64,000 nt of DNA from Anthoceros angustus (lineage: Eukaryota; Plantae; Anthocerotophyta). Location of the stretch: contig VJWM01000196.1 of assembly GCA_010909165.1 (NCBI GenBank), positions 62,001 to 126,000 on the forward strand, in the 5' to 3' direction. Below, one piece after another: positions 18,227 through 42,217 of this stretch (position 1 is its first letter; every line of letters starts with the position of its first letter). The translations under genes were made by a program, and so were the position numbers. The notes beneath the pieces were generated by a model. The model was not told the origin of the DNA. It made no database searches and was given only the letters and a program-made list of their open reading frames with translations.

Positions 18227-20513
18227 CTCCGCTCGATAGATAAGAGGAACTGAAGTCGGATTTCAAGCCTTAGAAACGGTAACATGAGCTTTTCGAGTTT
18301 CACGAATGTTCATTCCTGGAAACGGAATAGTGGAGAACCATTTGAACTAGAATTGAGTGAACTGTTGTAGTCGCAAAGATGAAATTTTCAAATACAACAG
18401 TTCCGATGAGGCAAGTCAACCAAAATTGAAAACTTTCACAAAATTTCAAAAGATCTGATGAAGCCAAATTTCTGCGTATGTAACTTTGCTATTTCCTTGG
18501 TAAAGGGGATAGTTTGTGGACAGACATTCTGGGCGCCCGAGGTCCTCTGTCCACCTCGAGCGAAACAGATTAGTAGATTCCCTTTATCGTGAACGCTGCA
18601 ACAGACGAGGACATAACGTTGATCTGCTCTACCAGCCTCCGGTGATTCCAGAAATCCACCCATCTTTGATACCCAGATCTGCATTGCAAGCGCGCGAATC
18701 GGTTTGTCTTATATCCTTATCTTATCTAATCAAGAGCTAGTGAAGAGCAGAGTGGACGATCTTGATCTGCAGTCAAAGCGATCTGTTATCACCAGTAGGC
18801 AATCTATCAATCAAAGTATAAACGAGGTCGCTGACTATCTAAGGAAGATTGATCTCACCCGTAAACAAGGAGATTCGAATGCTTCTTCATCTAGTGGCGA
18901 CCCTCATCTCTGAGATCTTCCATTGCGTGAAGTTGGAGCCACCAGGCTCATGGATTGGGAGATGTGAAGCGCCGTTACTACAGTCAAGCAGCGACTATAA
19001 TCCTGCCACTTCATCCCACTTGGTTCGGTTTTGCTTTGGAACATGAGCATAAACCTCAGAACCGAAGATTCTAAAATGACTCGCGTTAGGTTTGACACCA
19101 GACCATGCCTCCTCCGAGGTCATTCGAGATATAGCCTTGGTGGGAACTCTATTCAAAACATAAGTTGTTGTAGCAACAGCCTCTCTCCAAAAGCGTACCT
19201 TCAACCCACTTTGATGGAGCATACACTTGGCCACTTCCACTAGGCTCCTTAGTTTGCACTCCGCTACCACATTTTGCTTCGGTGTGTGAGGAATTATTAG
19301 TTGCCTCCGAATGCCATGCTTCTTGCAAAAGCTTTTAAATTGAGAAGAGATGTATTCTCCTCCATTATTGTCACTCCTGAGGCCAAGTCTTGAGGCATTC
19401 TCCACTTTTGTTCTCCGCCAAGACCTTTCACTCCTTGAATGTCTTGAACACCTTGGACTTCTCCTTGAAGAGATATGTCTAACTCCTCCTTGTGAAGTCG
19501 TCCATAAACACTAGAATGTAGCAGGCTCCTCCATGATGGGTGGGTTCTTCATTGGTCCACATACATCGGTGTGTACAAGCTCCAACAGCTACTCGATGCG
19601 CTCTTATCCTTGGGAACTTGGTTCAGTGAAGCTTTCCCATCATGCACCCTTGGCATAATCGCGGCTCACTAATCTCCTTTAAATCCAAGTCGATCTCCCT
19701 TTGTTGATTCTTCATCATCTTGATATTGTCCACTCCACTATGCCTCAAGCGTTGATGCCATAAGTCTACTGACCAGTGCTTTCAGGCTAGCTTGACACAA
19801 ATGTGCAAGCTTGTTAATCACCTAAAGAAGTCCACAACTCTTAGAGATTGTCTTCCCGAACACCTCAAGCTATTACTTTAACATTAGGTGATTCCAGTTG
19901 CTCGGGGTTGGATGCGACATCCCCTCAAGTTGAATACAATCTCATTTCCAGGGTTAGTGATTCTTAAAGGAAGTATTTATGTTAGCCTCATGAGATTAGG
20001 TCAAGATATATACATATATCAAATAGTGTGTACATAGCTTAAGAGACTTACCTCTTCGCTAGGGTTATGTTGTTTCGTATAGTCACACCCGTTCACTACA
20101 AGTTAAGTTAGCTTTAGGTTTGTCTGAACATATATAGTAAGTTACTTCTTCTTGATATATAATGTAATTATTAATCTAATTGATTTGAATCTATCCATGT
20201 AAAATGTCATGGTATCAGAGCATCTCTGATGCAAATTGCATTCAAAAGAATGCACATTAAATAGTGCATAAAATTCTATGCATTACAATGTATCTTTTCC
20301 TTCTTCTTGATTAGAAATTAGATTTTTAATTAAGAAAAGAAAAGAACATCAAGAAATGAATCTTGTAGAAACTTTCTCGAAATTTTCTAGACAGACTAAC
20401 AAAATCTGAAGTCCGTTCTAGTGCATCTCTGGTCAGATTGCTATCAAGCAATTCTGACTGAGGTCCACTAGAACAACTGCCATATTTGGAACCTCTATCC
20501 CGATCAGAGACAC

Positions 20514-20996
20514 TTGAACTTCGCCCCTGATTTGCCCAGACAGCAACCTCCAGAAGCGCAACGGCAGCATGTTCCATTTGGTAACCCTAATCCAAGGGGA
20601 TTCCTGACTACACACGCTGCACCAAACACGGGGATCACACAGTTACTAATCAGGCTTGAAACCCACCAAAATCACATGGATAGAAATTGTTGCAACATCA
20701 CTCGCCAACTGATTGCATCAAACGTGGATGTTCAAGACCTGAAGGAACAGATCTCTCATCTCGACTTCAAACTGCTGGTCTTGATGAAACCTCATTTGTT
20801 TGCTAACCCATCCATTCGTGGAGTTGCATGCAGGCATACAGGAAAAACTAATAAGAGCCACAGATTTGATACACCAAACTCATGTCCATCCTGCGCCGTT
20901 TACGCATTCAATAGGTGGGAAAAGAGAAACATGCAAATAGAACGTAAGCAAGCACTAGCACAGCAGGAAATTACTAACCCTGCTGATTTGCTCTGA
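20514..20996 (+). CDS. Accessory 5' ORF of Copia B (N-terminally truncated), coiled-coil plus CPSC motif
   Basis: Protein-level similarity to the 5' ORF of Copia C (37150-37873). Confidence 0.6.
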   Translation: MNFAPDLPRQQPPEAQRQHVPFGNPNPRGFLTTHAAPNTGITQLLIRLETHQNHMDRNCCNITRQLIASNVDVQDLKEQISHLDFKLLVLMKPHLFANPSIRGVACRHTGKTNKSHRFDTPNSCPSCAVYAFNRWEKRNMQIERKQALAQQEITNPADLL

Positions 20997-22392
20997 TGCT
21001 AGCTTAGGTTTCCTTTCACTGTCGAGCATCAGTCCTTAGACATTATGTTGTGATTAACCTGAACAGCACAGGTTACAACTTCACGCATTAGTGTCCCTTC
21101 AACTCTGCAAACATGGGTGACGACGACACAATCAAAATACCTGATGGCCTACTCAAAACGTCACTCAACATCAGCATAGACATGTTTAAGGAAAAGGACA
21201 GGTTCGGGGGGGAGAACTATGACATCTGGGTGATGCGTATGAAGGGAGCTCTCCAGAATAAAGGACTCTGGGAGATAACAAACAGAGAAGATGAATTAGA
21301 AGCAGATACAGCTGATGTTACAGCACACAAGGCATGGACAGCTAAAAACAGTGCAGCCATGTATATGATAAGGGGTGGCTTAACTACTGAAATGTTGAGA
21401 CACACCGCCGGTGCTACATCCGCAGCTGATATCTGGTCTAGACTTCGTAACGGCCTCGACCGTTCTCGGCCGTGACGCCCCTCCGAGCGTCCGTTCCCTA
21501 ATACGTGAACTCTACTCCGGCGCAAACGCAACCAGCCAGATGACAACCCTCAGGAATCTTCAATTCTGTAAAATGCGAGATGGTGATTTAGTGGAAAAGC
21601 ATGTTGCTACATTCAGACATCTGGTTTCTAAGCTGGAAGCAGCTACACAAGAAAACGTCAAGGAGGATATGCTAGCAATCTACCTAATGCTTTCCTTACC
21701 AGATTCCTGGTCGAATTTTGTGACCTCGTATAATACATCACAGGCACAAACTCAGAAATTGGCAACTGCTGCCAAAATTAAACTACCTCCTGTGACTTTC
21801 TCTGAGTTAGTGGGATCATTGCTTCAGGAGGAAGCCACAAGAGGTGGCAGCAAACATGGGAAACAGCAAGCCCTCTACACCAACAACTATGGAAGAGGCG
21901 GCAAATCTTACTCTAAAGGGAGACATACCACACCTGGTGCTGGGAGTTCTAAAGGAGCTCCCTCACAGAAGAAACCCAAAATGACCGGAAATGCAACTGG
22001 TGCAAAATTCCCGGCCATTGGGAAAACGAGTGTCGAAAGAAGCTAGCCGGCATACCTCGCAAGGAGGGCAATTAATCTTTGAGACACACGTTGTGGTAAA
22101 GCGATCCTCCCTTCACCGGCGAGGGGTAAGGGAGTTTGCTCAACCTTTAGCCTTTCCCACATGCTTGTCTGCAAAGACAGGATCTAGGCCATTTCATGAA
22201 TGGTATCTAGACACAGGTGCAACACCGCACATATGTTTTGACAGAAATGTTTTTGTCACATATAAACCTGTACAGGACCAGTTCGTCTATCTAGGCGAAG
22301 ACAGAGCACTCGTGTCTCCAGCCAAAGGCACAGTGAGTCTCCCTGTACCTTCAGGGCTTAAGTTGTCTCTCACTAACGTCTACTTTGTACCT

Positions 22393-24548
22393 GAGATGAC
22401 GAGAAATCTCATCTCTGTTAGACAACTAAACATGGACAATGATAGTCATGTACTGTTCACCTCCACAGAGTGCCAGATCACAAAGTCTTGGCTTATGGCT
22501 CATCAGATCACGATCTCTTCCGTCTTCACTTGCACAGTCACCCTGTGCGGTCTCATGTTGTGCCACATACTTCAGATGAATCTACACATCAAGCAAACAA
22601 AGCAACATTGTGGCACAATAGGTTAGGTCACCCATATAGTGCTAAACTGCAAAAACTAGCAACTAGTGACTTATACTATGATGGCAAGATTGGCACTCTA
22701 CCTGTACTTCCCTTGTGTGAAGCTTGTGTACTCTCCAAGCGTCACCAAGCAGCTTTTAAAAACAAGGCCCCACACAGAGCTTCAGATGTACTAGAACTTG
22801 TGCATACTGATCTTTGTGGACCCTTGTCACAGCCCTCTCTTGGGGGTGGCAAGTACTTTCTGACTTTCACTGACGACAAAACAAGATTCGTCACAGCTTA
22901 TATTTTGAAGGCCAAAAGTGACTGTTTCTCCTTGTTCAAGTCTTATCTCAAGTATGTAGAAAGATGGACAGGTAAACAGCTGAAGACTCTCCACTCTGAC
23001 AATGGAGGTGAATTCACAAGCAACGAATTCCAGGCCTACTGTCAAGATGAGGGCATAGGATTTGCGTCATGCCTACACCCCAAAGAAAAGCGGGGTTGCG
23101 AGCGCTGAACCTTACTTTACGAGATGACGAAATCTCATCTCATTGACAACTAAACATGGACAATGATAGTCATGTCACTCTCACAGTGCCGGATCACAAA
23201 GTCTTGGCTTATGGCTCATCAGATCACGATCTCTTCCGTCTTCACTTGCACAGTCACCCTGTGCAGTCTCATGTTGTGCCACATACTTCAGATGAATCTA
23301 CACATCAAGCAAACAAAGCAACATTGTGGCACAATAGGTTAGGTCACCCATATAGTGCTAAACTGCAAAAACTAGCAACTAGTGACTTATACTATGATGG
23401 CAAGATTGGCACTCTACCTGTACTTCCCTTGTGTGAAGCTTGTGTACTCTCCAAGCGTCACCAAGCAGCCTTTAAAAACAAGGCCCCACACAGAGCTTCA
23501 GATGTACTAGAACTTGTGCATACTGATCTTTGTGGACCCTTGTCACAGCCCTCTCTTGGGGGTGGCAAGTACTTTCTGACTTTCACTGGCGACAAAACAA
23601 GATTAAATCACGACTTATATTTTGAAGGCCAAAAGTGACTGCTTTCTCCTTGTTCAAGTCTTATCTCAAGTATGTAGAAAGATGGGATGTAACATGAAGA
23701 CTCTCCACTCGACAATGGAGGTGAATTCACAAGCAACGAATTCGTGCCTCTTGTCAAGATGAGGGCATAGGATTTGCGTCATGCCTACACCCCAAAGAAA
23801 AAGCGGGGTTGCGAGCGCTGAACCTTACTTTACGAGATGACGAAATCTCATCTCATTGACAACTAAACATGGACAATGATAGTCATGTCACTCTCACAGT
23901 GCCGGATCACAAAGTCTTGGCTTATGGCTCATCGGATCACGATCTCTTCCGTCTTCACTTGCACAGTCACCCTGTGCAGTCTCATGTTGTGCCACATACT
24001 TCAGATGAATCTACACATCAAGCAAACAAAGCAACATTGTGGCACAATAGGTTAGGTCACCCATATAGTGCTAAACTGCAAAAACTAGCAACTAGTGACT
24101 TATACTATGATGGCAAGATTGGCACTCTACATGCCCTTGTGTGAAGCTTGTACTCTCCAAGCGTCCTGCGACCTTAAAAACAAGGCCCCACGAGCTTCGG
24201 ATGTACTAGAACTTGTGCATCTTGATCTTTGTGGACCCTTATCCTGACCCTCTCTCTTGGGGTGGCAAGTACTTTCGACTTTCAGCGACAAAACAAGATT
24301 AAATCACGACTTATATTTTGAAGGCCAAAAGTGACTGTTTCTCCTTGTTCAAGTCTTATCTCAAGTATGTAGAAAGATGGACAGGTAAACAGCTGAAGAC
24401 TCTCCACTCTGACAATGGAGGTGAATTCACAAGCAACGAATTCCAGGCCTATTGTCAAGATGAGGGCATAGGACGGCAGCTGACTGTCGTCTACACACCC
24501 CAGCAAAACGGGGTTGCAGAACGCCTGAACCTTACTTTACAGGAGATG
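22393..24548 (+). repeat. Triplication (~715-bp unit) of the pre-integrase/integrase N-terminal region inside Copia B
   Basis: Units start at 22393, 23121 and 23834 (GAGATGACG..); the peptide PDHKVLAYGSSDHDLFRLH appears three times. Confidence 0.9.
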
Positions 24549-26874
24549 GTCTCCTCCTTTCTTCACCAGGCTTCTTTGCCTCTGCCCTACTGGGCTGAAG
24601 CACTCATGACCGCCGTTTATTTGCGAAACAGATTACCTACCACTGCTATCGGGAGACACCTTTTGAGGCCTTCTTTGGCAGAAAACCCTCTATCCAGCAC
24701 CTTCGTACTTTTGGGTGTATTGCCTATGCTTTTATCCCCAAGGAAAGCGGAAGAAGCTATCTGCAAAGGCCAGAAAACTCCTTATGATAGGATAAACTGA
24801 GGGAATCAAAGCTTACAAATTGTATGATGTACCTCATCAAAAGGTTATCTATGCCCGTAGTGTCACTTTTGCTGAAGGACTTGTTTGGAAATCAGTGGGA
24901 GCTACTTCTCCTCTAGATGACACTGATGTGTCTGCACTTCCTGATGTCACCGTGTTTAATGACTCTACTCCTGTGGAGCTTGCTACTGCAGGGGGGGGAA
25001 GAACCACAAGATCAGTTAGATGAACTAGCAGAGGACGATGCTCTTGCTAATGATCTTGAGGAGCAGCAGCCGCAACCTCCACCCGATGAACGTCAACCAG
25101 AACCAGACCAACCTGTTCCAGATGTCATCTTGGATAGTGACAATGAAGACGAACCACCAGATGAGCAGCCTGAAATGCATGAACCACCTCCACCACTTGA
25201 ACGCAGATACCCTACAAGGGACAGACATGCACCTGATTACTACAAATCACATGACTTTAGATCAGGAGCAGCACAAGCTCATGCTACAAATCTGGAACCT
25301 ATCGAACCTCGTTCTTATGAAGAAGCTTTGAGTAGGCCAGATTCTGCAGAATAGAAAAAGGCCATTCAGTCTAAGTATGACAGTCTCATTAAAAACGGCA
25401 CTTGGGAGCTAGCACAACTACCTCGGACGCAAGATTGTTTCTTGCAAATGGGTCTTTAAGTTGAAGGTTAAAGCGGATGGCACCTTCGACAGGTATAAAG
25501 CTAGACTGGTTGCACGTGGTTTCTCCCAAGTACCAGGACTGGATTACCTGGAAACGTATGCTCCTGTAGTCAAGCTAGCCACATTCCGTATCCTATGCGC
25601 AGTGGCAGCACACAACGATTATGAACTTGATATGTTCGATGTTAAAACAGCCTTTTTACGGCAAATTGGACACAGAAATCTACATGCAGCAGCCAACTGG
25701 ATATGTAGTTAAAGGCAAGGAGGACTATGTCCTACGCCTGATCAAAACTCTGTATGGTCTGAAACAATCTGCATTGGAATGGAATGCTGTCCTTGATGAG
25801 GAACTGCGAGCTTTGAGTTTTGTAAAGTGTACCTCAGATGGTAGCCTCTATGTATACAGAACTGGTGACACAGTTTGTTACCTAGCTGTATATGTGGACG
25901 ACCTTATACTTGCTTGCAACAGTCCCCCATTTATAACAAAGATCAATGGCATGCTATCCAAGAAATTCAAGATGTCAAATCTCGGAGCTTTACAAAGCTG
26001 TCTAGGTATTCATATTCAACGAGATAGGAAACGCAGAATTCTCACTCTCACTCAACCTAGATACCTTCTTGATAGTGCAGACCAGCTTGGACTTAAGGCG
26101 CGAAACCTGCATCCACCCCTTTGCCAAGTGGACTCAAGCTTAGTAAATCTATGAGCCCACAGACACAGACAGAAAAGGACAAGATGGTTCCAGTACCTTA
26201 CCGACAGGGTGTTGGAAAACTCATATATGCTGCAAATACCACTCGCCCAGAAGTGGCTTATTCCACCAGTGTGCTATCACAGTACCTTGAAAATCCTGGC
26301 CAAGAACATTGGACATGTCTTAAAAGGGTTTTCCGGTACCTCAAAGGAACAGCACAGCGTGGAATTGTTTACAGATACATACCTGACGTAGCTATTGACA
26401 TTGATGTCTACAGTTGATTATCTTGGCGACATTGATGAGAAGATCGATCTCGTTACGTTGTCATGTTTCTTTGGAGGACCAATCTGGTCGGTAAAAGCAA
26501 CCTCGGTTGCTCTATCAAGCAAGTGTCTGAGTCCTCACAGTGCAAGGAGATAGCTTGGTGTAAGTTGTTATTCAGCGAGCTTGGACTTCCTCTGCCCACC
26601 TGCACAATGATTAGAACTGATAGTCAGGGCTCAATGAACTTAGCGGCGAAGCCCGTATTCCACTCATGCACGAAGCACGTTGAGGTGGAGTCTCACTTCA
26701 TTAGGGATCTTGTCAAAGGTGGACGGATCATGCTCGAATATGTGCCAACAACAAAAACCCAGCAGACATAATGACAAAAGCTCTGGGAAGAGAGCTGCAC
26801 GAAAGACATATGAGAGGTCTCGGGATGGGGAAGCCAAGTGACTTCCTCAATGTTTCCAACTAGCTACCTAGCCA

Positions 26875-27700
26875 CTAGTCACATCCCCAATCTACACTAT
26901 CTCCCTCTTCACTATCCACTGGCAGACTTGCGCGGCTTCCAAAGGTATCAGGCTCTGAAGAATCTGGGTCATGCTCTGAGACTGTTGTGAAAGTTTCATC
27001 AGACTTAGGGGAGTTTCTCTTCTTTCGCTCTGAATAAGAGATACGCTCTTTAGTCTCCAAGCTATGCTCATCTTCGAGTCTGGCCTCAGAACTTGCACAG
27101 CAAGTGGGAGCAATTAGGGAAGTGGAAGGAACAAACTGGGATGCTGACATATTATGGTGTGGTACTCACGGTAGTAGCTGACGACATGCCTCTCGAATTC
27201 ACGGCAGTGCTCAACCCTCACACGAACCATCCTGAGTCGGGTATACAGACACTTGTACCACAAAGGAGTGCATGGAATGGCGATGGAGCCAAGGCTCACA
27301 ATCTTTGTCTCATCATCAGTCTGTGTACGAAACTTAAGCGGCCTGACTCGGCGGTGGTCCATTCGCGTATTCAAACTCACACCTTTGGGCGAATCTTATC
27401 CGGCGTCTCTGGTGAACATGCGTTCCTCGGTGGCGATCTGCAAGGGATGCCATGCTAGAGGAACCGACATTCTTATGAGAGGACACTGTCCCCAGGCGCC
27501 TCTGCTCTAGAAAAGATTTAGTAGTCCCGCGAGGCCTTCCTCTTGGCCGCCCTCCACCTCTCGCAGCAGGAGCTGGCCAACATCTCTGCTTGTCTTTGGC
27601 CAGTGGAGGCGGTGTTCTAGCAGTCTTGACAAACACCTAAGCTATCGCGATGATACACACGGCACTTAGTAGGAGAGGAGCCGGACTCGAAGAGGCCATC
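26875..27700 (-). pseudogene. Antisense 3' accessory ORF of Copia B (frameshifted), AT-hook-like
   Basis: Consecutive minus-strand ORFs 27334-27636 (GRPRGRPRG), 27114-27380 (ETKIVSLGS..P.TP) and 26875-27150 (acidic/Ser-rich tail). Confidence 0.6.
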
Positions 27701-29038
27701 TGAGCCCTCACGATCTTATGCCCGGCTTGCGAATAAAAGACTCAAAGCATAAAGGAATGCTATAATGAGCGCCGCGCACCTCTCCAAAGTTTCACAGATA
27801 CGCTCCATCGCGTTTCTAAAGAATTAGAGGTGCGGGCGTAGTCCAGTACACACCGACAAGTGGGCTTCACGCTCAGCTGATTTCACAGTCTCATATGCTA
27901 CCCGCGGAGGAGAAGACGAAGAGGAGACGTCCAAATCGTCGTGATCCAACAAGGGGAAGTAAAGGAAGTATTTATGTTAGCCTCATGAGATTAGGTCAAG
28001 ATATATCCAGATATTAAATAGTGTGTACGTAGCTTAAGAGACTTACCTCTTCGCTAGGGTTACGTTGTTTCGTATAGTCACATCCGTTCACTACAAGTTA
28101 AGTTAGCTTTAGGTTTGTCTGAACATATATAGTAAGTTACTTCTTCTTGATATATAATGTAATTATTAATCTAATTGATTTGCATCTATCCATGTAAAAT
28201 GTCAATTCTTGCTACTGAAAGAAGATTCTTCGCGAGACCAGGCACATGGTGCACATCCTTGATTGTACCTTTGGATGGTCCTCCAGGAAGTTGAACCTTG
28301 ATCACACCTCTTTCTTTGATCTCATGTGACCTATTGTCTCCAAGCGCCACCTTATGCCCTGTTAGCATTTCTTCATAGCTTGAGAACCAAGGCCGATTTT
28401 AGGTGAAGTGTTGAGACACTCCAGAGTCGAGATACAAACTCTCATCCTTCTTTGATGGGCGTTGTCATACGGTTGAGACAGTAAAGAGATATTCTTCCTC
28501 CTCACTCACTTGATTGGCTTGTGACTAAGGACCTTTCCCTTCTTCTTCAAGTCAGCCAACCTTGTCATACAATCCTTGGTATAATGGTTAGGCTTTTTGC
28601 AATAATAGTAAGTACCCCATACCTTTTTCTTCGCACCTTTCTCCTTCGATCCTTCTCCAGAGTTGGGTTGTGAAGTCTCCCCATGTGTTATTTCCTTCTT
28701 TGAGAATAGCACCAAGTCTTCTTTCTTGAAGGAATTCTCCAGCTCCTCTTGTAGGAGCAACCTAGCCACCTCATCCAACGTTGGTGGTTTGTCACTTGGA
28801 CGCATTGCTACCGCCGTTTTGAAGGCCAACACAACTTACTTGTATGCGAATGGTAGGCTACTCAGTAACACCATGATAACCTTTCTTTTGGAAGGTTTGA
28901 CGTTCGCCACCTTCATTTAATCCACCAAGTTCTTCAACTTGTTGACGTGTTGTTGAATGGTATCACCCTCAGCCATCTTGAAGTTGGCAAATTGTTGCTC
29001 CAACAGTATTTCATCCACCAAGCTCTTCTTTTCATATG

Positions 29039-29445
29039 TGTTGCAGAGGGTCATCTATGCCGCTTTTGAGGTTCACGCTCACTCAATTGAGAGAGTATGT
29101 CATCGAACACATTGAGGAGGATTGTCGCCAACGCTCGTTTATCTTTCTCATATGGAGCATTGCTGTTATAGCTACTGCATGCTACCTTTCCACCTTTGCA
29201 TGCTGTAGTCTGACACTGTACTTGTAAAGCTTGTCAGACTACATTTCTACTTTTACTTTTAGATCCTACGTTTAGTCAAATTGCATTCCTACTTCTAGAA
29301 TCGGTACTTATAAAAGAAAGCCATCCTTAGGCCTCGCGATCGGCCATCCATCGAAGCCATCCTTGGACCTCGACCGTCCATTAAAGCCATCCGAGTCCTT
29401 GGACCTCGGCCATCCATTGATTATTTGAACAAAATGATTCTAACA
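29039..29445. mobile_element. Probable solo LTR (407 bp, TGTTG...TAACA)
   Basis: TG..CA termini, flanks ATATG/ATGTG (1 mismatch), internal TATA-like site and GCCATCC repeats; it truncates the gag of element A. Confidence 0.55.
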
Positions 29446-29695
29446 ATGTGGATATAGGGAGAGGGATGCTAGGTGGTGCTCGGGCAGGAGGGGGCACCGG
29501 CATGCATCAACCTGCTCGTGCCCCGCCTCAGCATTGACCTCTCCTCCAATTTAGAAGTGTTAGTAACGAAAACGATATAGGGGAGAAACATACGAAAGTT
29601 GTATGTAAGTATTTATTTCATGTTTTATATTTGATTATGATGAATAGAAACCCTAACTAACCGACTTGCCCTGTCTAGGTGAAGGGACATAGCAG

Positions 29696-30678
29696 TTGAG
29701 TTCTCATTTTTGCGAAGGCCAGACAGGAAGAGTCACATCTCCCCTCTATCCTAAAGGCATCCAGTGCATCATGCTTGGATACTCCGATGAGGTAAAGGGG
29801 TTTAGATTATACGATACTACAACCAAGAAAGTCATCTTTAGTAGAGATGTTGTTTTTCTGAGGTTGTGGAACCTAATAAAGGAGTGGGAGCAATGCAAGT
29901 TGTCATCAAGGAATTGAAGGAGCACGAAAAAGCACAAGACTCGGTTCATGAGCAACCTACTCTTAAGCATGCTCAACCTATTCTTGATCATGAGCAACCT
30001 CTACCACAAGGTGACAAAGGAGGTGGAGAAGCCCCGGATGTCGAGGATGATGAAGAGAAGCAAGATCGAAGAGTCCAAGAGGTGCCACTGACCTAGATCA
30101 GGAGATCAACAAGGCGATGGAATTCTTCGCAGAAAATTTTGGAGTCCATGAATGCATGCAAGTACGAAGAGGCTATGTTCACAAATGCTGATGAGCCACA
30201 AAGCTTGAAGGAAGCCTTGGAAGCACCAAAAGCAAAGGAGGGGAAAGAAGCTCTGCAGAGTGAGTATAACTCAGTTATCAAGAACAAGACTTGGGAAATC
30301 ACTCCTCTACCCCAAGGAAGGAAGTGCATAGGATCCAAATGGGTGTTCAGATCAAGTACAATGCTGATGGGAGCATAGAGCGATACAAAGGAAAGGCTGG
30401 TGAGGAAGGGATATACACAAGTGCCAGGTATTGACTACACCGACACTTTCTCCCATGTTGCTAAGATAACATCTATTCGTATACTTTTAGCAATAGCAGC
30501 TATCATGGATCTGGAGATACATCACATGAATGTCCTAACTGCGTTTCTCAATGGAGATGTGGAAGAAGAGATCTACATGAACCAACCAGAAGGACATGAA
30601 GTGCCAGGTCGGGAAAATGAGGTATATAAATTGCTAAAGGCACTCGATGGTTTTAAGCAATTTGCACTTACCTGGTAA
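29696..30678 (+). mobile_element. Copia integrase C-terminal/RT fragment
   Basis: CIMLGYSDEVKGFRLYD..VIFSRDVVF; EPQSLKEAL; [28 protein letters not shown]; [19 protein letters not shown]. Confidence 0.85.
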
Positions 30679-31579
30679 GACATGATAATTTTTGAAGGGG
30701 GGGAATATAGTAACCTCCTTCGCTCGAAACAACACCCCCTTGTCACATTTTAAACCCTTCCTGCGATAACATATCTGCCAAGCTTTGATAATGGGCACAC
30801 CCTTTTGTGAGTACATGCCTTAAATAAAAGACGCACTTTCAATTCTACACCCCATAACTAGAGCATTGTAGGGCGCCGGCCCGTCTACGTTTTTGTAGAA
30901 TGCACAGTGGCATGGGCTGCCGTTTGCATTTGTTTATTACAACCGAAAACATTTACTTTTCAAGTGGTGGAACACAATAAAAATCATGCCTGTACTTGCG
31001 AGAGTCTCATTTTAGTATTCGTGAAAACCTTGCAATAAACAATTGCTCAAGGAGGAAATGGTCATCAGCATCAACAATAGTCATTCAAGAGGGCGGCCTA
31101 GCGACTAAATTATACCTTCTTGCGCCCGATCTTGAGTCGGGACCACCGCCAAATTCCGAAGGCGGTCCATATCCTCCGCGTAAAAGCTGTCATTCTCCTC
31201 CAATGCTTGCTCGTATTCATTAGTATAATTCTTGGGCTGATCTTCGGACGGTGTCGACTGCCACATAGCATTTAGGGTCTGCTAACCCTCATCCAAAAGC
31301 TCGCCAGTCGTGGTCTTCAACCTTCTGACACTCAATGCAACCACTTCGACTTTAAGGCAATGCCAACATCCTTAAAATAAACAAAGTTGGTTGCCCATGC
31401 GCCCATGCAAGCGTCCTTGAAATCAACAAAGTTGGGCTATTAAGAAGGTAGAAATTTCGAACCCAGACACTACTCATTACTACACTTTGTTTCCAACGCT
31501 TGAGCAACTATCCCAAGTTGCAAAGCTCTTGAGCCGCTAAATATTTATTTTATTCAAAGCAGCCTATGAGCAGGCCATG

Positions 31580-31720
31580 GGGAGGGCACTGGCCGGCCGA
31601 CTGGCGCCCTCCCCTAGCTCCACCCGCATGCACCGACAGGTGGTGCTAAGGGAGGGCTCCGGTCGGCCGGCGCCTTCCCTTAGAGCCACCCTACGATGCA
31701 TGCGGGTGAAGCTAGGGGGG
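31580..31720. repeat. GC-rich compound inverted repeat
   Basis: CCCCTAGCTCCACCCGCATGCA pairs with TGCATGCGGGTGAAGCTAGGGG; GGTGGTGCTAAGGGAGGGC pairs with GCCTTCCCTTAGAGCCACC. Confidence 0.8.
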
Positions 31721-32215
31721 GAACAAGAAGGGAACGGCAGGTATCCTATCACCAACGGAAGGTGTGGCCCATTTGCAGGAAGGGTTAAAAGATTTGCGTC
31801 CACAGACGACTGCTGAAGTGTACAAGTGGTGCGAAGCCTTTCGGGTGGACCAGAAGAAGATTGCGGTCATTGTGGAGAATAACATTGGGCTAGTGCTAGA
31901 GCGTCCCTAGAAGTGGTTTTCACGTGTAGAAGTGGATCATACAGCCCGACCACTACAAGTGCCGAATGAAGCTTTGTTGGATGAGGCATTATCGAGGGAC
32001 CTCCCACAACATGATATGTACTTAGGGGTGTGGACTGCGGACTCTCCCCCTTAGGAAGGTAATAAACCGTTTTTTGTTTTTCGTTAGTGTAGAGTGGAGA
32101 ATAAGGCGGAAAAAGGGAAATAAGGTTAGGAAAAGAGGAGATGGTGATGGACGGTAGAAAGTGATGAGGGCGGGTGGCAGAAACCGGCGAGCCACTCCGC
32201 CTTGAACTCGGAGTG

Positions 32216-35200
32216 GGCAGCTCTGGGTGAACTCGGAGTGGGCAGCTCTGGTGAACTCGGAGTAGGCTGCGATAAGTCCGCCAGGAAAAGTAACTTCGGG
32301 AAAGGGATGGAGCGCAATTGGCAGGGGGGCCACGTGGGCCAGTCTTGAGAGGAGAAGCAGGGGATCGGCGGACCCGACCTTGAGGGTTGTGGCCGTTATG
32401 GGCGGTAACCATGACCCAAGTACATACGCAAGGAGGCGGCAGGCGCAAGGCTAGAGTACACGATGCAAGGCCAGCGATTACAGGCGTGAAGGACGCGTCC
32501 TCCATGCTTCAATTACTTCCGGCCGAGAAGGCCATTCTCTCGGAAACTTCATTTTTTTTGGTCACTTGCGCTCAGGCATCCCGCTCTGGCGCTTTCTCTT
32601 CAGCCCATGCGCACCTACAGCCATCGCCTCCAGGCGGGCGCTCATCGCGGAACTTGGCGGGAGCATTCTCACCCACCACCTCACGTGACATACCGGCCCG
32701 GTGGCAGTGTGGGACCCAAGAAGGCGGCGGAGGTCCGGAAGCCTGCACCTAGTAGAGAAAAACATTGTCACCAGGCACTACCTAGATTTCGAACCCTGGC
32801 TGGCGGAGGCAGAGGAGCTGGTCCAGGAATGGCACCTAGACATCTTCCAGGCGGTGTGGACCTTTGTGGATGACACGGGTACGCCTAAGATGTCAAGCGG
32901 CCAACAACAAAACTGTCCGGTCCAAGAGCCTGAGGGAAGACCCAAGGAGATGGACCGTGGAGGTCCTGAGTGCGGTCTACAATCGCCCAGTGGAGGAGAT
33001 CGAGGGCATAGTTCCGGAGCCCCTCAAGGTAAAAGGGAAGGTGGAGGCGGCGAAGGCGGCACTTCTGAGGCCGGGGATGCAGCGGTCCTCCAACGGGTGG
33101 TTGATGTCGGACCTGTTGGATCAGGGCGTATCCCGTGCGACCCCCCATTGTGTGGCATGCCCTGATGATCAGGTCACATGCAGCATGCAATCGCGGTGTG
33201 CAAACCCCGGCAAGCGCTTCAACTGGCGGAACGTCTCGTGGAACACAAAATCGGAGTGGCCATACGAGCGGCTAACCCACCGCTGGCAGGAAACCCTTTG
33301 GCTGCGGACATGGCATTTCTCGGGCCGCAAAGTGTTAGGGAGGATTGTAATCGGGCGGCCGGCGATGCAGTACATTGGGGTTTGAACTGCGAGGAAGGTG
33401 CATGGGCCCGGAAAAAGCGCTCTCTTCGGAGGAAGTAGGCGGCGCGAGGTCTGGAAGGTGTTGAGGCCACCGACTCTGCACCTTGGCCATCATCTGGGGC
33501 AAAAAGCGGCTGTGAAGGGTGCCCATGGACGTGGCACGCGGCGGCCTTGCAAGGCAGGCGGACGAAGAAGGAAGAGGGTGGCCAGTGGGCCAGCACGGGC
33601 TGCATCAACAGGACTTGGCGGAGGGCCATCAACCTGAGGACGGTGAACACTTCATGCAATTCCCGTCTGACGGCGGGGATGAGGGGGTGGAGATGAAGGA
33701 TGCATAGGAGGCCAGTTGCATCGCATGCCACTAAGCGTATACGATTTGGTGGTGCAACACTTGCGAGAGGCCATTGAAAGGCCTACCGGTGGAGCTAGCT
33801 GCGGCTTGAGCACGGTGACGAGGCTCCTACATCGGCTGCAGCATGGCCTTGAGGTGTATGGGAGGCTGTATGCAGTGCGGGAGGCAGCTCTGGGTGAACT
33901 CCGGGAGGGGCGCGCGGACGAACTCCGGAGTAGGCTGCGATAAGTCCGCCAGGAAAAGTAACTTCGGGAAAGGGATGGAGCGCAATTGGCAGGGGGGCCA
34001 CGTGGGCCAGTCTTGAGAGGAGAGCAGGGGATGCGGACGAGACCGCGAGGTTGTCGGCCGTTATGGGCAGGTAACCATGACCCAAGTACATACGCAAGGG
34101 AGGCGACGGCGCAAGGCTAGAGTACACGATGCAAGACGTGATTACGGCAGGGGGCGTCCTCCATGCTTCAATTACTTAGAGAGAAGGCCATTCTCTCACT
34201 TCAGCATTTACGGTCACTTGCGCTCAGGCATCCCGCTCTCTGGCGCTTTCTCTTCCGACGCCCAAGCGCACCTACAAGCGGCCATCGCCTCCGAACTGAG
34301 CGCTCATCGCGGCGGAACTTGGCGGGAGCATTCTCACCCACCACCTCACAGCAGCATACCAGCCAGCGCGCGAGTATGGGACCCAAGAAGGCGGCGGAGG
34401 TCTGGAAGCCCTGGCACCTAGTAGAGAAAAACATTGTCACCAGGCACTACCTAGATTTGAACCACAGGTGGCGGAGGCGGAGGAGGAGTCGGGAGAATGG
34501 CACCTAGACATCTTCCAGTGGTGTGGACCTTTGGTGACACGGAGTCTCGCCGGAAGATCTTGTGGCCAACAAAATCCGGTCAAGAGCACGAGGAAGACCC
34601 AAGGAGATGGACCGTGGAGGTCTGAGTGCGGTCTACAATCGCCCGGATGGAGAGATCGAGGCATAGTTCCGGAGCCCCTCAAGGTAAAAGGGAAGGTGGA
34701 GGCGCGGCGGCACTTCGAGGCGGATGCACGGTCCTCCAACGGGTGGTTGATGTCGGACCTGTTGGATCAGGGCGTATCCCGTGCGACCCCCCATTGTGTG
34801 GCATGCCCTGATGATCAGGTCACATGCAGCATGCAATCGCGGTGTGCAAACCCCCGGCCCGCAAGCGCTTCAACTGGCGGAACGTCTCGTGGAACACAAA
34901 ATCGGAGTGGCCATACGCGAACAGCTAACCGAGCCGTGCCGCCTGTAGGAAACCCTTGGCTGCGGACATGGCATTTCTCGGGCCGCAAAGTGTTAGGGAG
35001 GATTGTAATCGGGCGCCGGCTGTGCAGTACGAGCTGCAATTGGGGTTTGAACTGCGAGGAAGGTGCATGGGCCCGGAAAAAGCTCTCTTCGGAGGAAGTA
35101 GGCGGCGCGAGGTCTGGAAGGTGTTGAGGCCACCGACCGCACCTTAGCCATCATCCAGGGCAAAAAGCGGGCATGAAGGGTGCCCATGGAGCGTGTGCGC

Positions 35201-35510
35201 GGCCTTGCAAGCGGCGGACGAAGAAGGAAGAGGGTGGCGGTGGGCGGCCGAGGCACATCAGGACTTGGCGGAGGGCCATCAACACCCGAGGACGGTGAAC
35301 ACTTCATGCAATTCCCGTCTGACGGCGGGGATGAGGGGTGAAGGAGATGAAGGGATGCATAGGAGGCGGGGTACGCGCCATAAGCGTATACGATTTGGTG
35401 GTGCAACGCTGTGAGGCCATTGAAAGGCCTACCGGTGGAGCTAGGGCGGCTTGAGCACGGTGACGAGGCTCCTACATCGGCACGGCATGGCCTTGAGGTG
35501 TATGGGAGGC
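32216..35510 (+). repeat. ~1.67-kb tandem duplication (32216-33870 / 33883-35510) of the 5' part of the DDE element
   Basis: Shared peptides in both copies (IVPEPLKVKGKVEA, HCVACPDDQVTCSMQSRCANP); the second copy is indel-rich. Confidence 0.9.
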
Positions 35511-37149
35511 TGTCCGGTCGGGTGTGCAGCGATTGCCACGCACACACCCATCACCCGATGCAGCGTGAATCTTTGGAATACGATTCTGCGGCAGGCAAGA
35601 TCGACAGTCGGCGATGCGCATCCGCGGCGTCGATACCAATGCGACACCCATGTACATGTGGCATATGGATTGTAAGTGCGTGATGCAGTCGGGGCTGTCT
35701 GCGATGTTCGCAGGATCGCGTTGCATGGAAGAAGTGATTGCAGGAGTTGTGATTGCAATCGGTGATGGGTGCCTAATGCCTTGTGCGCAGCTTATGACAA
35801 GATGTACCAATTCTACTTCAGAGTGCATGGGGCCATAGATGGGGCAACCCATTACGCCCCGGCCCAGATCTTGGAGGATAACAAGCGGCACGAGATTTTC
35901 AACGCCTATGTGGAAGCGTTGAGGAAGTTTGGGCATCCGCAGCGGATTCGGTCGGACTACGCAGCAGAGCACAACCTAATAGAGGCAGATATGAACCAAG
36001 CGAGGCCAAGGGCACATGGAAGCAACGTCATCCGCAGCCCCTCTATGCACAAGCAGGTAAAAGTTTGGTGCTTGGTCTGCGTTGTCCTTGTCTGCAATGA
36101 CAGCTGGTGAAGGCAGTGAATGCGGGATTGTTGCAGAGGATTGAGCATTTCTGGCGGTCCTTGGGAGAAAAGTGGGCGTTCCTCTACAAGGGGTACATGA
36201 TGGATATGGTGAGGAGCAGCGAATTGGACATCACCAACCCCTGGCACATCCATTCGCTCCACGTGACCTTCATGCCCACGATGAGGGCGGAGCTCAAGCG
36301 TTGGAGGCAGGTATGGAATAGGCACCGGGTGCGGAAGATCGAGGCGGCCAGCGGGACATCCCGGCCATGTGCACACAATCGCATTCCAAGAAGAAGGTAC
36401 AAGGGTGGGTGCGACCACCCGCATATGGGGCTGAGGAGGACGATGGCGAGGAGTTCGATGTGGGTGGCCCTCAGTATGCACAAAACGTGGCCCCGGAGAT
36501 GCCACCACTCAGCGGCATTGAATTGCTGACCCCGGTGAGCAACTGCATGACAAAATAAAGGGTCGTTAGGGTGTTATCAGCATGTTAAGTAGTTAAATAA
36601 TTAAGTTAAGTCAGCTTACCCTTTCACTAGGGTTACGTCCCTTAGACGAACAGTTACGACTTTTCAAGTTCTTAGTTTTAGTTTTGCTTTTCTGCATAAG
36701 CAAGTTACTTCTTTATTGATATATACGATGCAATTATATTAATTGATCCGCGTTATCCTAATACCGCGTCATGGTATCAGAGCTTCTATAGCGTGGATTG
36801 CATTCAAGAGAATGCGCATCAAATTGTGCACGTTTGGATTTGCACAAACATGTGTTTTTGGTTCTTATCTTTTTAGAAATGTTCTTTAAAGATAGCCCAA
36901 AATAATCAAGAACTTACACTCTGATTTGCTTCTTTATAATTTAATCTGCCTGTTTTTAAGATTGCATTTTGCAGATCTGGTGAGCATTCTAGCGTATCTA
37001 TGCCAGATTGCTATTCCAGCAATTCTGGAATAGGTGCGCTAGGACACCCGTCAGATGCTGCAACTTGCATTTAGAAGGCATTTATAAAATAAAGAAAATA
37101 AGGATGCATTCTGAACGCATCTCTACAATAAGAGTCACAGCCATCAGAA

Positions 37150-37873
37150 ATGGCACAAAATGAAGGCCAGATTTGGCAACCACGGCCTGCTGAGCGGGTT
37201 CAGCGCAACCGCCCAACAAGAGGACAGCTTAACGAAAGGAATGTAGCAGAACGACTCCATCAAAACACACAAGAGTGGATTTACAGAAACCAGGATAGAC
37301 CTGCTCATAGCAGTCGCCTACGCGAGGCCTACAATTTGCTGGTTTCAACTCTCTACCCAGATTACCAAAACCTAATTGCTGGTCCTCAAGAGCAGGTCAT
37401 AGGCGCTGATCATCAGAACTTGCGCCCCAGAGTTGCTCTAGATGTTCACGAGAACCCTAACGGTTTCTTCACAACACAGCCTGCACCACAGGCCACAATC
37501 ACACAGATTATTTCCAGGGTGGAATCACATGCCTTGTTTGTAGACAGAAGATTTGTGAATCTCAACAAGAGCGTGGCGGTGTGAATGTGGATTTACATGA
37601 CTTGAGGGAGCAACTCATCACTTGACTACAAGTTGCACGCTCTTCCGCCGTAACTTTTGAAGAATCCAATTCCGCACATTTGTCAGAAGATCCGTGAAGA
37701 GTACTAACGGTAGTCAACGTTTTGTTGACCCAAATTCTTGTCCTTCATGTTCAACCTATGAACTCAATAGGCTCATGTTAAGGAAACATCAGATAGCAGA
37801 AAAGGAAGCACAACAGGCAGCCAGTTTGCATGAGGTAATCAGACCTGTCGACATGCTAGCTGCCCTTTTGTAG
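37150..37873 (+). CDS. Accessory 5' ORF of Copia C (frameshifted after ~37575)
   Basis: ATG at 37150; manual translation of the downstream frames gives NVDLHDLREQL and DPNSCPSCSTYELNR..EVIRPVDML, matching the Copia B ORF. Confidence 0.65.
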
Positions 37874-40800
37874 CTTTGTCTCTGCATATAGGCCAGTAGT
37901 TTCATTTCCCTCTAGACCTCCAGCAATGGGAGACACAGCCTCTTCATCAGTTGTGGGAGGTGGGGAAGGCTTTAAGGAGAAAGACAGGTTCGATGGACGC
38001 CAATATGACATCTGGGTCATGCGCATGAAAGGCGCACTCCAAAGCAGAAAACTGTGGAAGACAACACAAGGGTTAGATAAAGCACCAGAAGCAGAAACAG
38101 CCCTGCAAAACGAGGCACGTGAGCAAAGGAATGAAGCTGCCATGTACCTCATAAGAAGTGGACTCACAGCCGACATGATGCATCAAACATCAGGTTGTGA
38201 AACTGCTGAAGCAATCTGGGACCGCCTGGAAGAGCTGTATGCTGGAAAGAATTCTGCCAATCAATTATCAGCCCTTAACAACCTTCAGCAGTGTAAGATG
38301 CGTGAAGGAGAATCTATAGAGAAGCATATTATGACCTTCAGAACCCTAGTATCCAAGCTAGAACAAGCTACTGGCGAAACAATCAAGGATGAGATGCTAA
38401 CACTTTACCTGTTACTCTCATTACCTCCCTCTTGGTCACACTTCGTGACATCGATCCATGCATCCCAGTTACAGGTAGCTAAATTGGCTAAGTTAGCTGA
38501 TCTCAAAGTACCAGAATTAACATTTGCAGAACTTGTAGGGTCACTCCTGGAAGAGGAGTCGACCAGAGGTGTATCAGGCAGGCGTGCTGGCAAGCAGCAA
38601 GCGCTGTTCACATCCAACCGTGGTCGAGGTGGTGCAAGACCATACTCCAGAGGCGGTGGATCTGGTTCATCACGAAGTGGCAGCTCGCAAGGAGGCCACT
38701 CATCACAATCTGCAAATAAGAAAAACAAGAAATCGTGGACTTGCAACTGGTGCAAAATCCCAGGTCACTGGGAGAGGGATTGCAGGAAAAAGCAAGCGAG
38801 GCTTACCTCGCAAGGAGGGAAGTCGAGACCAACGTTGTGTTCAAGAAGCAACCATCGCCATCGCTCATGGTTGGGACAGGAGGGTACACTAACTCTATCT
38901 CCTCACCCACATGTCGTCACTAAAACAACTGCCGCTTCAGATATAGTGGTACCTTGATACAGGGGCCCGCTCACATGTGCTTCAACAAATGCTTTCACAA
39001 CATACAGTGCCTAAGGATCAAGATGTTTACCTAGGTGATAACGGATCACTTGTCTCTCCGTATAGGACTGCTGAGTTGCTCGCATCCGGAGTCATGCTTT
39101 CACTTATAGATGTGTATTATGTCCCCGAGATGACACGCAACCTTATTTCGCTAGACGCCCCAACATAGACAATACCACATTCTGTTCACGAACACAGAGT
39201 GTAAGGTGATAGATGCCTTTAATCCTAGCAGAGTCCTAGCCTACGGGTCCTCAGAACATGACCTGTTTCGCTTGCATACCAAGGGTGGGATAGTGCAGTC
39301 TCATCTCACACATAAGGACTCCCCTGCCTCTGCACAACAAATTGCAAAGACTAAGTTGTGGCATGCACGCTTAGGTCACCCACACAGCAGCAAGTTGCAG
39401 AAATTAGCTGCTAGTGACCTATATGCTGATGGTCCTATAGGCAAGTTAGTGCCTTTACCTCTTTGTGAGCCATGTGTCCTGGCTAAGCGCCATCAAGCAG
39501 CTTTCAAGAATAAAGCTCCTCACAGGGCTTCCGAAGTCCTTGAGCTGGTGCATACAGACCTGTGTGGCCCCTTGTCTAAGCCTTCTTTCGGTGGTGGGAG
39601 ATACTTCCTTACCTTCACAGATGACAAGACACGTTTTGTCAGTGCTTATATCCTTAAAGCTAAAAGTGAGTGCTTCTCACACTTCAAAGCTTACCTTAAG
39701 TTTGCAGAACGCTGGACAGGGAAGCAATTGAAAACCCTACGTTCAGACAATGGTGGGGAATTCACCTCACATGAATTCCAGGCTTTCTGTACTGAAGAAG
39801 GAATTGGTCGGCAGCTAACAGTTGTGTATACCCCTCAACAGAACGGGGTCGCAGAGCACATGAACCTTACTTTGCAGGAGATGACCTCCTCATTGTTGAA
39901 CCACGCTCACCTCCCTTTGTCCTACTGGGCAGAGGCCCTCACAACTGCTGTTTACCTAAGGAACAGGTTGCCCACTAATGCTGTTCAAGGAATGACTCCC
40001 TACGAAGCCTTTTATGGACACAAGCCCAAGATCCTGCATCTCAGGACGTTTGGTTGTATAGCTTATGCCTTTGTCCCCAAGGAAAAGCGCAAGAAGCTGC
40101 AGCACAAGGCCAGAAAGTTGCTGATGTTAGGTTATACTGAAGGCATCAAGGCATATAAACTGTATGATGTGCCTACTAATACTGTTACATACTCCAGGAG
40201 TGTTACCTTTGATGAACAGAGTTTCCGCCGGAGCTTCGACGACTCGCCTGGCGATGTGGAATCTCGAGCAGATGTCTCATATTTTGATGACCTCCCTGAG
40301 GACGTTGCTCCTGCAGATGGGGAACCTGAGGATCCGCCAGCATATCAGGAGGAACCTGCATTTGTAGTTGCTGATCCAGTGCAGCAGCAACATCCTCGTG
40401 CGCTCTTACCTCCACTTGACGAGGAAGAGGCAGTCGCAGCAGAGTCTGATGCTGATGATGCTGCCCAGGTAGATCTTGACATCCAGGAACCACATCGTGA
40501 GCAGCCCGATCCACCTGCTGATCCACCTGAACGCCGTTATCCCCAGCGTGAACGTCGTCCTCCCGACCATTATCAGTCCATTGACTTCAGGGCACCTCAA
40601 GCACATGCTGCTTTCCTTGATCCCATTGAACCACAGTCATATGAGGAAGCTCTCAGGAGGCCTGATTCTGCAGAATGGAAGAAGGCAATTCAGTCCGAGT
40701 ATGACTCACTCATTAAAAATGGGACTTGGGAATTGGCCAAGTTACCTCCAGGTCGAAAGATGGTATCCTGCAAATGGGTATTCAAGCTTAAGGTTAAAGC

Positions 40801-42217
40801 TGATGGTACTTTCGACAGATATAAAGCTCGGCTTGTAGCACGAGGCTTTACACAAGTACCAGGGCTTGACTATTTTGAAACATACGCACCTGTTGTAAAG
40901 ATGGCCACCTTTCGTACCATATGTGCTATAGCAGCACACAAGGATTACGAGTGCAGATGTTCGATGTCAAGAGCTTTCTTACATGGAAAGCTTGACACGA
41001 GATCTACATGCGGCAGCCGCTGGATATGAGGTAAAAGGAAGAGGACCATGTCCTGCGACTCATAAAACCTTGTATGGCCTCAAACAGTCAGCACTAAAGT
41101 GGAATGAGGCTCTTGATGAAGAGCTCCTAGCTTTAGGCTTCGTCAAGTGTAAGGCCGATGGGAGCCTCTACGTATACAAAAAAGGGGACACAGTATGCTA
41201 TTTAGCAGTGTATGTAGATGACCTGATCATAGCCTGCAACAGTGGGGCATACATAACAAAGCTGAATCTGTTACTGGCAGAGAAATTTGAGATGTCCAAT
41301 TTAGGTCCTCTGCAGAGCTGCCTAGGTGTTCATATACAAAGGAACAGGGACAAGAGGGTGATAACCCTTACCCAGCCTAGGTACTTACTTGACAGTGCAG
41401 AACAGATGGGCTTAAAGGACGCGAAGCCTGCCTCTACCCCACTACCTACAGGGCTTAAGCTCAGTCGTGACATGAGCCCTGAGACACAACAAGAGAAGGA
41501 AGCTATGGTTAACATTCCATACAGAAGAGGAGTAGGTAAGTTGATCTATGCTTCTAATACAACGAGGCCCGACATCTCTTTTGCCACGAGTCATCCCAAA
41601 GATCTTGAGACCCTGTAAGGTGAGCATTGGCTTAAAAGGGTGTTCAGATACTTAAAGGGAACCTATGATGTGGGACTTAAATATGAATACAGCCCCGAAG
41701 CTCTAGACCTGGCAGTATACACAGACTCTGATTATGCTGGTGATGTTGACTCTAGAAGGTCAGTGTCAGGCTATGTTGTAAGCTTTGCCGGAGGGCCCAT
41801 ATGCTGGAGCAGCAAAAAGCAACCCACAGTAGCCACCTCGAGCACAGAGGCCGAGTATCGGGTTTTAACAGCAGCAGCTAAGGAAGTAATCTGGCTCAAA
41901 CTGCTGCTCAAGGAAATGGGACTGGACCTTCCTACATGCACAAGTGTAAAGACCGACAATCAGGGCTCTATGGCACTTGCTAAAAACCCAGTGTTTCATT
42001 CAAGGACCAAACATGTTGAAGTAGAGTACCATTTCATTCGTGAACAAGTGTCTGCAGGCAAGATAGTGCTGGAATATGTTCCCACAGCCGACAACCCTGC
42101 AGACATACTTACGAAAGCACTGGGGAGAGACCTGCACACAAGACACCTTAAAGGTCTTGGGTTAGGGAAGTCTGAAGACTTCGCAACCCACAAAGTCTGA
42201 AAAACAGATATCTATGC

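Follow-up and report, generated by a model that had tools for sequence, protein, structure and literature searches.

We analysed a stretch of 64,000 nucleotides (nt) of the Anthoceros angustus (Anthocerotophyta) genome, positions 62,001 to 126,000 of contig VJWM01000196.1, which is referred to below as the window. It contains two separate complete Ty1/Copia insertions on the plus strand, Copia B (19965-28204) and Copia C (36548-43520). Between the primer-binding site and gag both elements carry the remains of an additional sense-oriented open reading frame (ORF), here termed ORF0, and these stretches very probably derive by decay from a genuine accessory gene carried by a clade of bryophyte Ty1/Copia elements. 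The leaders in which they lie are unusually long, 903 nt in Copia B (20210-21112) and 1154 nt in Copia C (36772-37925). A tblastn search with the Copia B frame against the whole 64-kb window returned the Copia C leader as its sole match (summed E 6e-16).

In Copia B the ORF0 relic occupies 20472-20996 of the plus strand and comprises 174 open codons plus a stop, with conserved blocks extending from 20589 (NPRGF...) to 20993. The first in-frame ATG, at 20676, falls past the first of these blocks, and about 90 N-terminal codons that Copia C has are missing. Ahead of the NPNGF block there are approximately 100 codons in Copia C versus 40 in Copia B, and nucleotide alignment suggests a loss of about 275 nt in the latter. 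The N-terminus of Copia B can be aligned to Copia C in two alternative ways, both hinging on an ATTTGG-AACC motif and indistinguishable from two copies. An earlier note on this DNA had quoted four pairs of alignable peptides from the two leaders, all of which we found where it had placed them. Its ORF coordinates held in part: the span 37150-37873 does hold the Copia C frame, but the Copia B frame opens at 20472 and not at 20514, a TTG listed as a start by the ORF-finding program, and Copia C consists of four pieces rather than two ORFs.

The first Copia C piece (37150-37584, plus strand, frame 1, 144 codons) begins with an ATG in good context, having A at -3 and G at +4, and encodes a basic Gln/Asn-rich N-terminal part followed by the NPNGFFTT...ESH block; its terminal TGA was made by the loss of 1 nt. 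The remaining pieces lie on the same strand. The second (37584-37625, frame 3) reads NVDLHDLREQLIT before a stop and contains NVDLHDLREQL, and the third (37615-37668), once more in frame 1, reads SSLDYKLHALPP, an in-frame TAA at 37651-37653 and then LLKNP. The fourth, in frame 2, extends from 37688/37694 to the stop at 37873 and includes TNGSQRF-VD-PNSCPSC. The Copia C copy is thus spread over three frames by three frameshifts and is further interrupted by one stop, and measured against the Copia B spacing between conserved anchors it is short of 1, 2 and 5 nt at three places. Its interrupted pieces sum to about 245 codons, and a fuller ORF0 of the Copia C type would have some 240-250. Homology between the two copies also takes in SHLDFKL/SSLDYKL, and their stops are homologous, following ...DLL in Copia B and ...DMLAALL in Copia C.

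The position of the stretch directly upstream of gag, in the same orientation, raises the question of whether it belongs to Gag, as a leader peptide or as the N-terminus of a longer protein, and looks separate only due to decay. The copies are degenerate, and the stops that end them could be secondary. Against this, the stops are homologous, and the spacers that separate them from the gag ATGs (116 nt at 20997-21112, ahead of the ATG at 21113, in Copia B; 52 nt at 37874-37925, ahead of the ATG at 37926, in Copia C; both on the plus strand) have stops in every frame and place ORF0 at unlike frame offsets to gag. The two gags share a conserved start, Met-Gly-Asp, whose ATG is in good context. 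In contigs from another sample, described below, the listed 1-nt insertions and deletions, with 42 further indels outside the list, affect the LTR (long terminal repeat), the spacer between ORF0 and gag (37881-37909) and the early part of gag, where two compensate each other; those in the spacer are a further point against a continuous frame. We regard a Gag extension as highly improbable, and from the sequence layout we take ORF0 to be a separate upstream cistron and not part of gag.

Protein-level comparison of ORF0

For comparison the two copies were aligned as six ungapped blocks totalling 134 codons, using the pieces as they stand, with no frame repaired and no consensus built. The earlier note's view that the DNA had diverged while the amino acids were retained is borne out, with 53 % identity in DNA and 46 % in protein, and a summed BLOSUM62 score that is 302 in frame and drops to 12 and -9 when the frame is shifted. 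Shuffling of the alignment columns (5000 shuffles, best of three frames) gave 69±20 with a maximum of 157. Differences are distributed over the three codon positions as 56/46/85, and the LWL85 method gives a nonsynonymous divergence (dN) of 0.47 and a synonymous divergence (dS) of 1.8, dS being undefined by NG86. The gag genes of the same pair, used as a control, are 54 % identical in protein and 59 % in DNA, with differences of 98/69/168, a dN of 0.40 and a dS of 2.2 (LWL85). By these measures ORF0 appears to behave as a slightly faster-evolving gag. Stops are absent from the ORF0 frame and number 5-13 in the remaining forward frames, and shuffled leaders rarely have open stretches as long as those in Copia B (174 codons, p ~0.001) and in Copia C (150 codons, p ~0.009).

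The leaders also contain blocks that are conserved in a different manner. Right after the primer-binding site a short conserved hairpin (TGCATTC-loop-GAATGCA) extends to about 20268 in Copia B and to about 36830 in Copia C. This block (20210-20268 versus 36772-36830) is 80 % identical in DNA with similar tblastx scores in all six frames, a pattern by which it is judged to be non-coding. A second, non-coding hairpin of 59 nt lies just upstream of ORF0 on the plus strand, at 20416-20474 in Copia B and, homologous to it, at 36987-37045 in Copia C. It has 79 % nucleotide identity between the elements, a folding energy of about -29 kcal/mol and 23 consensus pairs, three of which show compensatory double changes between Copia C and Copia B, and its role may lie in packaging, dimerisation or translation.

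With two such hairpins, complete with compensatory changes, in the same leaders, ORF0 itself might be an RNA signal of the leader, conserved for packaging, dimerisation or regulation and not for coding, whose peptide likeness is accidental. The two kinds of conservation differ, however. ORF0 blocks give tblastx matches in the sense frame and hardly any by blastn, and at 53 % DNA identity they are alike in one frame and stop-free in that frame alone, in contrast to the hairpin blocks, which are 79-80 % identical in DNA and alike in all six. An RNA signal is therefore an extremely improbable explanation of ORF0.

ORF0 might instead be a passenger, a fragment of a host or foreign gene captured once by an ancestral element and of no role for it. 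Extra ORFs in plant LTR retrotransposons form a heterogeneous set, apparently acquired many times (PMC6317226), a history with which such a passenger would agree. On the other side, no related protein was found in Pfam, in the PDB, among 5.8 billion clustered proteins or among 1.84 billion representatives, and unselected DNA would not hold 46 % identity in one frame while its synonymous sites, and the leader around it, changed past the point of alignment. We consider a functionless passenger highly unlikely. The single-frame similarity, the excess of third-position differences, the gag-like dN and the six-frame contrast with the non-coding blocks together argue that ORF0 was once protein-coding and was kept by selection during the divergence of the two families.

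The claim of an accessory gene under purifying selection, made in the earlier note, needs to be moved back in time. ORF0 was conserved as a protein, with a gag-like dN and a saturated dS, but both copies are dead in this window, and selection acted in the past on active ancestors and not at these loci.

Related copies and the predicted ORF0 product

Three DNA contig sets with small shares were located, and related copies were observed in contigs of one other sample (two runs). These contigs are 80-95 % similar across LTR, leader, ORF0 and gag. Over the N-terminal part of the Copia C ORF0 (37223-37449 and 37237-37412) they are about 86 % identical without gaps, and a contig covering the non-coding leader (36987-37212) has four gaps. 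One contig has 118 letters in place of the 110 nt of Copia C at 37578-37687. The spacing between the homologous anchors in Copia B (20714-20831) is exactly 118 nt, and this is the length that joins the upstream and downstream frames of Copia C, a hint, from sequence length, that copies of ORF0 with an intact frame may exist.

Further searches for the element and its leader gave negative results. A degenerate DNA pattern for F-x2-PNSCPSC-x2-Y-x2-NR had no matches in metagenome contigs, and a shorter pattern without the leading F-x2 had none in viral contigs. A query with the Copia C pol drew 74 Copia loci from the metagenome contigs; their identity did not exceed 45 %, and every one lacked an ORF0 homologue. 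The Copia C gag had no match in viral contigs and no record in an exact look-up in public assemblies, and a word-indexed protein search with it returned nothing at E<=1e-10, probably owing to a length filter acting against full polyproteins.

The ORF0 product is predicted to be basic (isoelectric point 9.4-9.8) and Gln/Asn-rich, with no obvious hydrophobic segment seen. From the N-terminus on, it is predicted to consist of a basic stretch rich in Gln and Asn, two long helices, a short Cys turn (C...CPSC) and a basic C-terminal helix. CPSC is conserved between the two copies, and another Cys, perhaps conserved too, lies upstream of it by 17 residues in Copia B and by about 20 in Copia C, where the alignment crosses a frameshift. 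The His positions around CPSC differ between the copies, which share one His overall. A small bridge in a low-confidence AlphaFold model puts Cys106 near CPSC (124-127), and the ORF0 pieces matched no zinc-finger family of Pfam. A homodimer prediction scored 0.17, which is below the mark and counts neither for nor against self-association. The zinc-binding and oligomerising role put forward for ORF0 is guesswork.

Relatives of the protein were sought widely. The three ORF0 pieces matched no Pfam family at E values up to 0.1, including PF10536, PF04195 and PF03078, which represent extra ORFs carried by Ogre, Retand and Athila. No relative was returned by a word-indexed search of 5.8 billion proteins with the Copia B frame and the first Copia C piece, or by HMMER with the Copia B frame against 1.84 billion representatives. 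Sequence searches of the PDB, with a single sequence and with a profile, produced only matches with E of 0.5 or worse.

Several observations weigh against reading ORF0 as a genuine gene. Protein similarity guided the choice of alignment, and this inflates both the in-frame score and the third-position excess. A dN/dS comparison, which the earlier note had suggested, gives about 0.26, not near 1, a ratio that is only indicative given that dS is saturated. ORF0 is broken in both copies, and the comparison comprises only these two. Substitutions displayed in the related contigs over 37173-37468 show no codon-position bias, with 5 of 12 at the third position. The search of sequencing runs found no RNA run holding the ORF0 stretch, and hence no evidence of its transcription or translation. 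The AlphaFold model of the Copia B frame, built from a three-row alignment, predicts helices at 37-69, 73-96 and 125-153 with a mean pLDDT of only 44. Both pieces submitted to the ESM Atlas found no usable match, with low protein-language-model recognition scores, and no ORF0 homologue was found in any protein library searched, so that the gene has no confirmation from outside. With these points taken into account, a decayed accessory gene is still the reading we consider very probable.

The host elements and their surroundings

Copia B is flanked by a 5′ LTR of 245 bp (19965-20209, plus strand), which lacks a TG start and ends in TGTCA, and by a 3′ LTR (27960-28204) 97 % identical to it, with a target-site duplication of ATTCT (19960-19964 and 28205-28209). 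Copia C has a 5′ LTR of 224 bp (36548-36771, plus strand; TGAC...GTCA), a 3′ LTR (43298-43520) that is 95 % identical to it and a target-site duplication of CTGCA (36543-36547 and 43521-43525). Polypurine tracts, AAGGGGAAG and AAGTGGGAG respectively, are present ahead of the 3′ LTRs. Pfam domains in Copia C follow the order PF14223 (gag), PF13976/PF00665 (integrase) and PF07727 (RVT_2), which is that of Copia-type elements, and Copia B is homologous to it throughout. The Copia C gag (37926-38957, plus strand, 343 codons) contains PF14223 and a CCHC knuckle. Gag-pol is dead in both elements, their polyproteins being split into several ORFs.

The primer-binding site TGGTATCAGAGC directly follows the 5′ LTR in both elements, at 20210-20221 in Copia B and 36772-36783 in Copia C (plus strand). 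We take it to be the sequence classically complementary to the 3′ end of full-length initiator tRNA-Met, a match that would speak against an assignment to Bryco. In Bryco, the moss Copia lineage of REXdb, the primer-binding site is complementary to a half-molecule of tRNA-Met in 100 % of elements (PMC6317226, supplementary file 5).

Other features of the window concern the history of the insertions. A 716-bp unit of the N-terminal integrase region of Copia B is repeated three-fold in tandem (22466-24194), the other copies matching the first at 99 % and 84 % identity. Copia B itself sits inside an older Copia on the minus strand, of which integrase fragments lie to the left (19019-19763) and a gag fragment to the right (28536-29036), and from which no leader ORF could be recovered. 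ORFs at 35769-36529 on the plus strand, with an rva_4 integrase-core domain (PF24764, E 5e-10), stop just before the target site of Copia C and resume beyond 43525; Copia C may have inserted into a transposase-like gene carrying this domain. A third Copia family is present on the minus strand at 56700-64000, with pol fragments 30-50 % identical to Copia C and large internal duplications spaced about 3.1-3.9 kb apart; its gag and leader fall beyond the end of the window, outside the reach of the ORF0 comparison.

Expression, function and known systems

ORF0 is situated in the sense direction between a structured leader, comprising the primer-binding site and the two conserved hairpins, and gag, and it was maintained as a protein during the divergence of the Copia B and Copia C families to synonymous saturation. 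In active elements it would be the 5′-proximal cistron of the full-length RNA, and splicing, re-initiation or internal initiation would give access to gag-pol. Leaky scanning is ruled out for gag by the 11 further ATGs that intervene between the Copia C ORF0 start and the gag ATG. In Copia C a weak splice donor at 36980 together with acceptors at 37916/37924 would excise ORF0, a pairing that is not clearly conserved in Copia B. We rejected a second candidate, a GAG/GTAATC donor in the tail of the Copia C ORF0 joined to a pre-gag acceptor, as it is out of frame with gag and absent in Copia B.

Both elements also contain homologous antisense ORFs between pol and the 3′ LTR, at 26875-27150 in Copia B and 42627-43244 in Copia C (minus strand; tblastx), which share an AT-hook-like RPRGRPRG and the blocks ERISY..R..RNSP and ETKIV.LGS. 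Together with ORF0 these give Copia B and Copia C a three-gene layout.

As to function, a tentative proposal by analogy is that ORF0 encodes a small basic nucleic-acid-binding or self-associating factor that might join the RNA-Gag particle of the element, in the manner of a retroviral accessory protein or of LINE-1 ORF1p; the chief alternative would be that it counteracts silencing by the host. LINE-1 ORF1p, too, is small and basic; its ORF lies 5′ of the enzymatic one on a shared RNA, with a short spacer between them, and the protein self-associates through a helical region, after which comes a part that binds nucleic acids. The analogy is a functional one, however: LINE-1 is a non-LTR element, there is no evidence of kinship in sequence or fold, and Copia elements already have Gag for the particle. 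More broadly, ORF0 and the 3′ antisense gene could define an undescribed three-gene clade of bryophyte Ty1/Copia elements, in which ORF0 would be an orphan RNA- or particle-binding or anti-silencing factor needed for the success of the clade and produced from polycistronic or alternatively spliced genomic RNA, a scheme that we offer as possible but doubtful.

Among plant Copia elements, the one well-known extra ORF typical of a lineage is the env-like ORF of SIRE (Sirevirus). That ORF is located downstream of pol, has a far greater length and is mostly predicted to contain transmembrane segments, with helical or coiled-coil segments often predicted as well, whereas ORF0 is small, basic and upstream of gag. 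Retrosat2, in which an ORF0 has also been named, is a Ty3/gypsy element.

The Retrosat2 ORF0 of rice, like the one described here, precedes the gag-pol ORF (Gao et al. 2012, PMC3485330). No other organism is reported to have it, and its divergence outpaces that of the polyprotein (PMC3485330). The LTRs of Retrosat2 exceed 3.2 kb (PMC3485330), as against 224-245 bp in the small Copia elements B and C, and the two ORFs are likened by description and not by sequence. On this footing the Retrosat2 ORF0 is the nearest named analogue, in a very different element.

Extra ORFs in plant LTR retrotransposons are well documented (PMC7264820). The earlier note had regarded canonical Copia elements as having gag-pol only and 5′ extra ORFs as best known from Ty3 elements. 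The first part is too strict, as Neumann et al. 2019 reported 582 Copia elements whose extra ORFs reach 250 codons or more, in 45 groups (PMC6317226). The second part agrees with their lineage table, in which 5′ forward ORFs are prevalent in no Copia lineage and occur in Ty3/gypsy in 33 % of Tekay, 23 % of TatII and 21 % of Ogre elements (PMC6317226). Extra ORFs are flagged there in 3 of 16 Copia lineages, namely SIRE (3′F, 74 %) and Bianca and Ikeros (2-6 %, with ambiguous columns) (PMC6317226). ORF0 resembles their eORF-5′F type in being a sense ORF between the 5′ LTR and gag, separate from the polyprotein, lineage-restricted and without a recognisable domain (PMC6317226). It falls under the 250-codon cut-off of that survey, with 174 open codons in Copia B and about 245, interrupted, in Copia C (PMC6317226). 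Our searches of open-access papers turned up no account of an ORF0 in bryophyte Copia elements.

The customary view of plant Copia elements is of gag-pol with nothing besides, to which ORF0 would add an accessory gene, apparently together with a second, antisense one, in a clade of an early-diverging land plant. Without a homologue in the libraries such a gene is liable to be missed by annotation pipelines or labelled as an orphan host gene. Its presence raises the questions of what use it would be to a retrotransposon that already has Gag, and of how gag-pol would be translated behind an upstream cistron of 240 codons.

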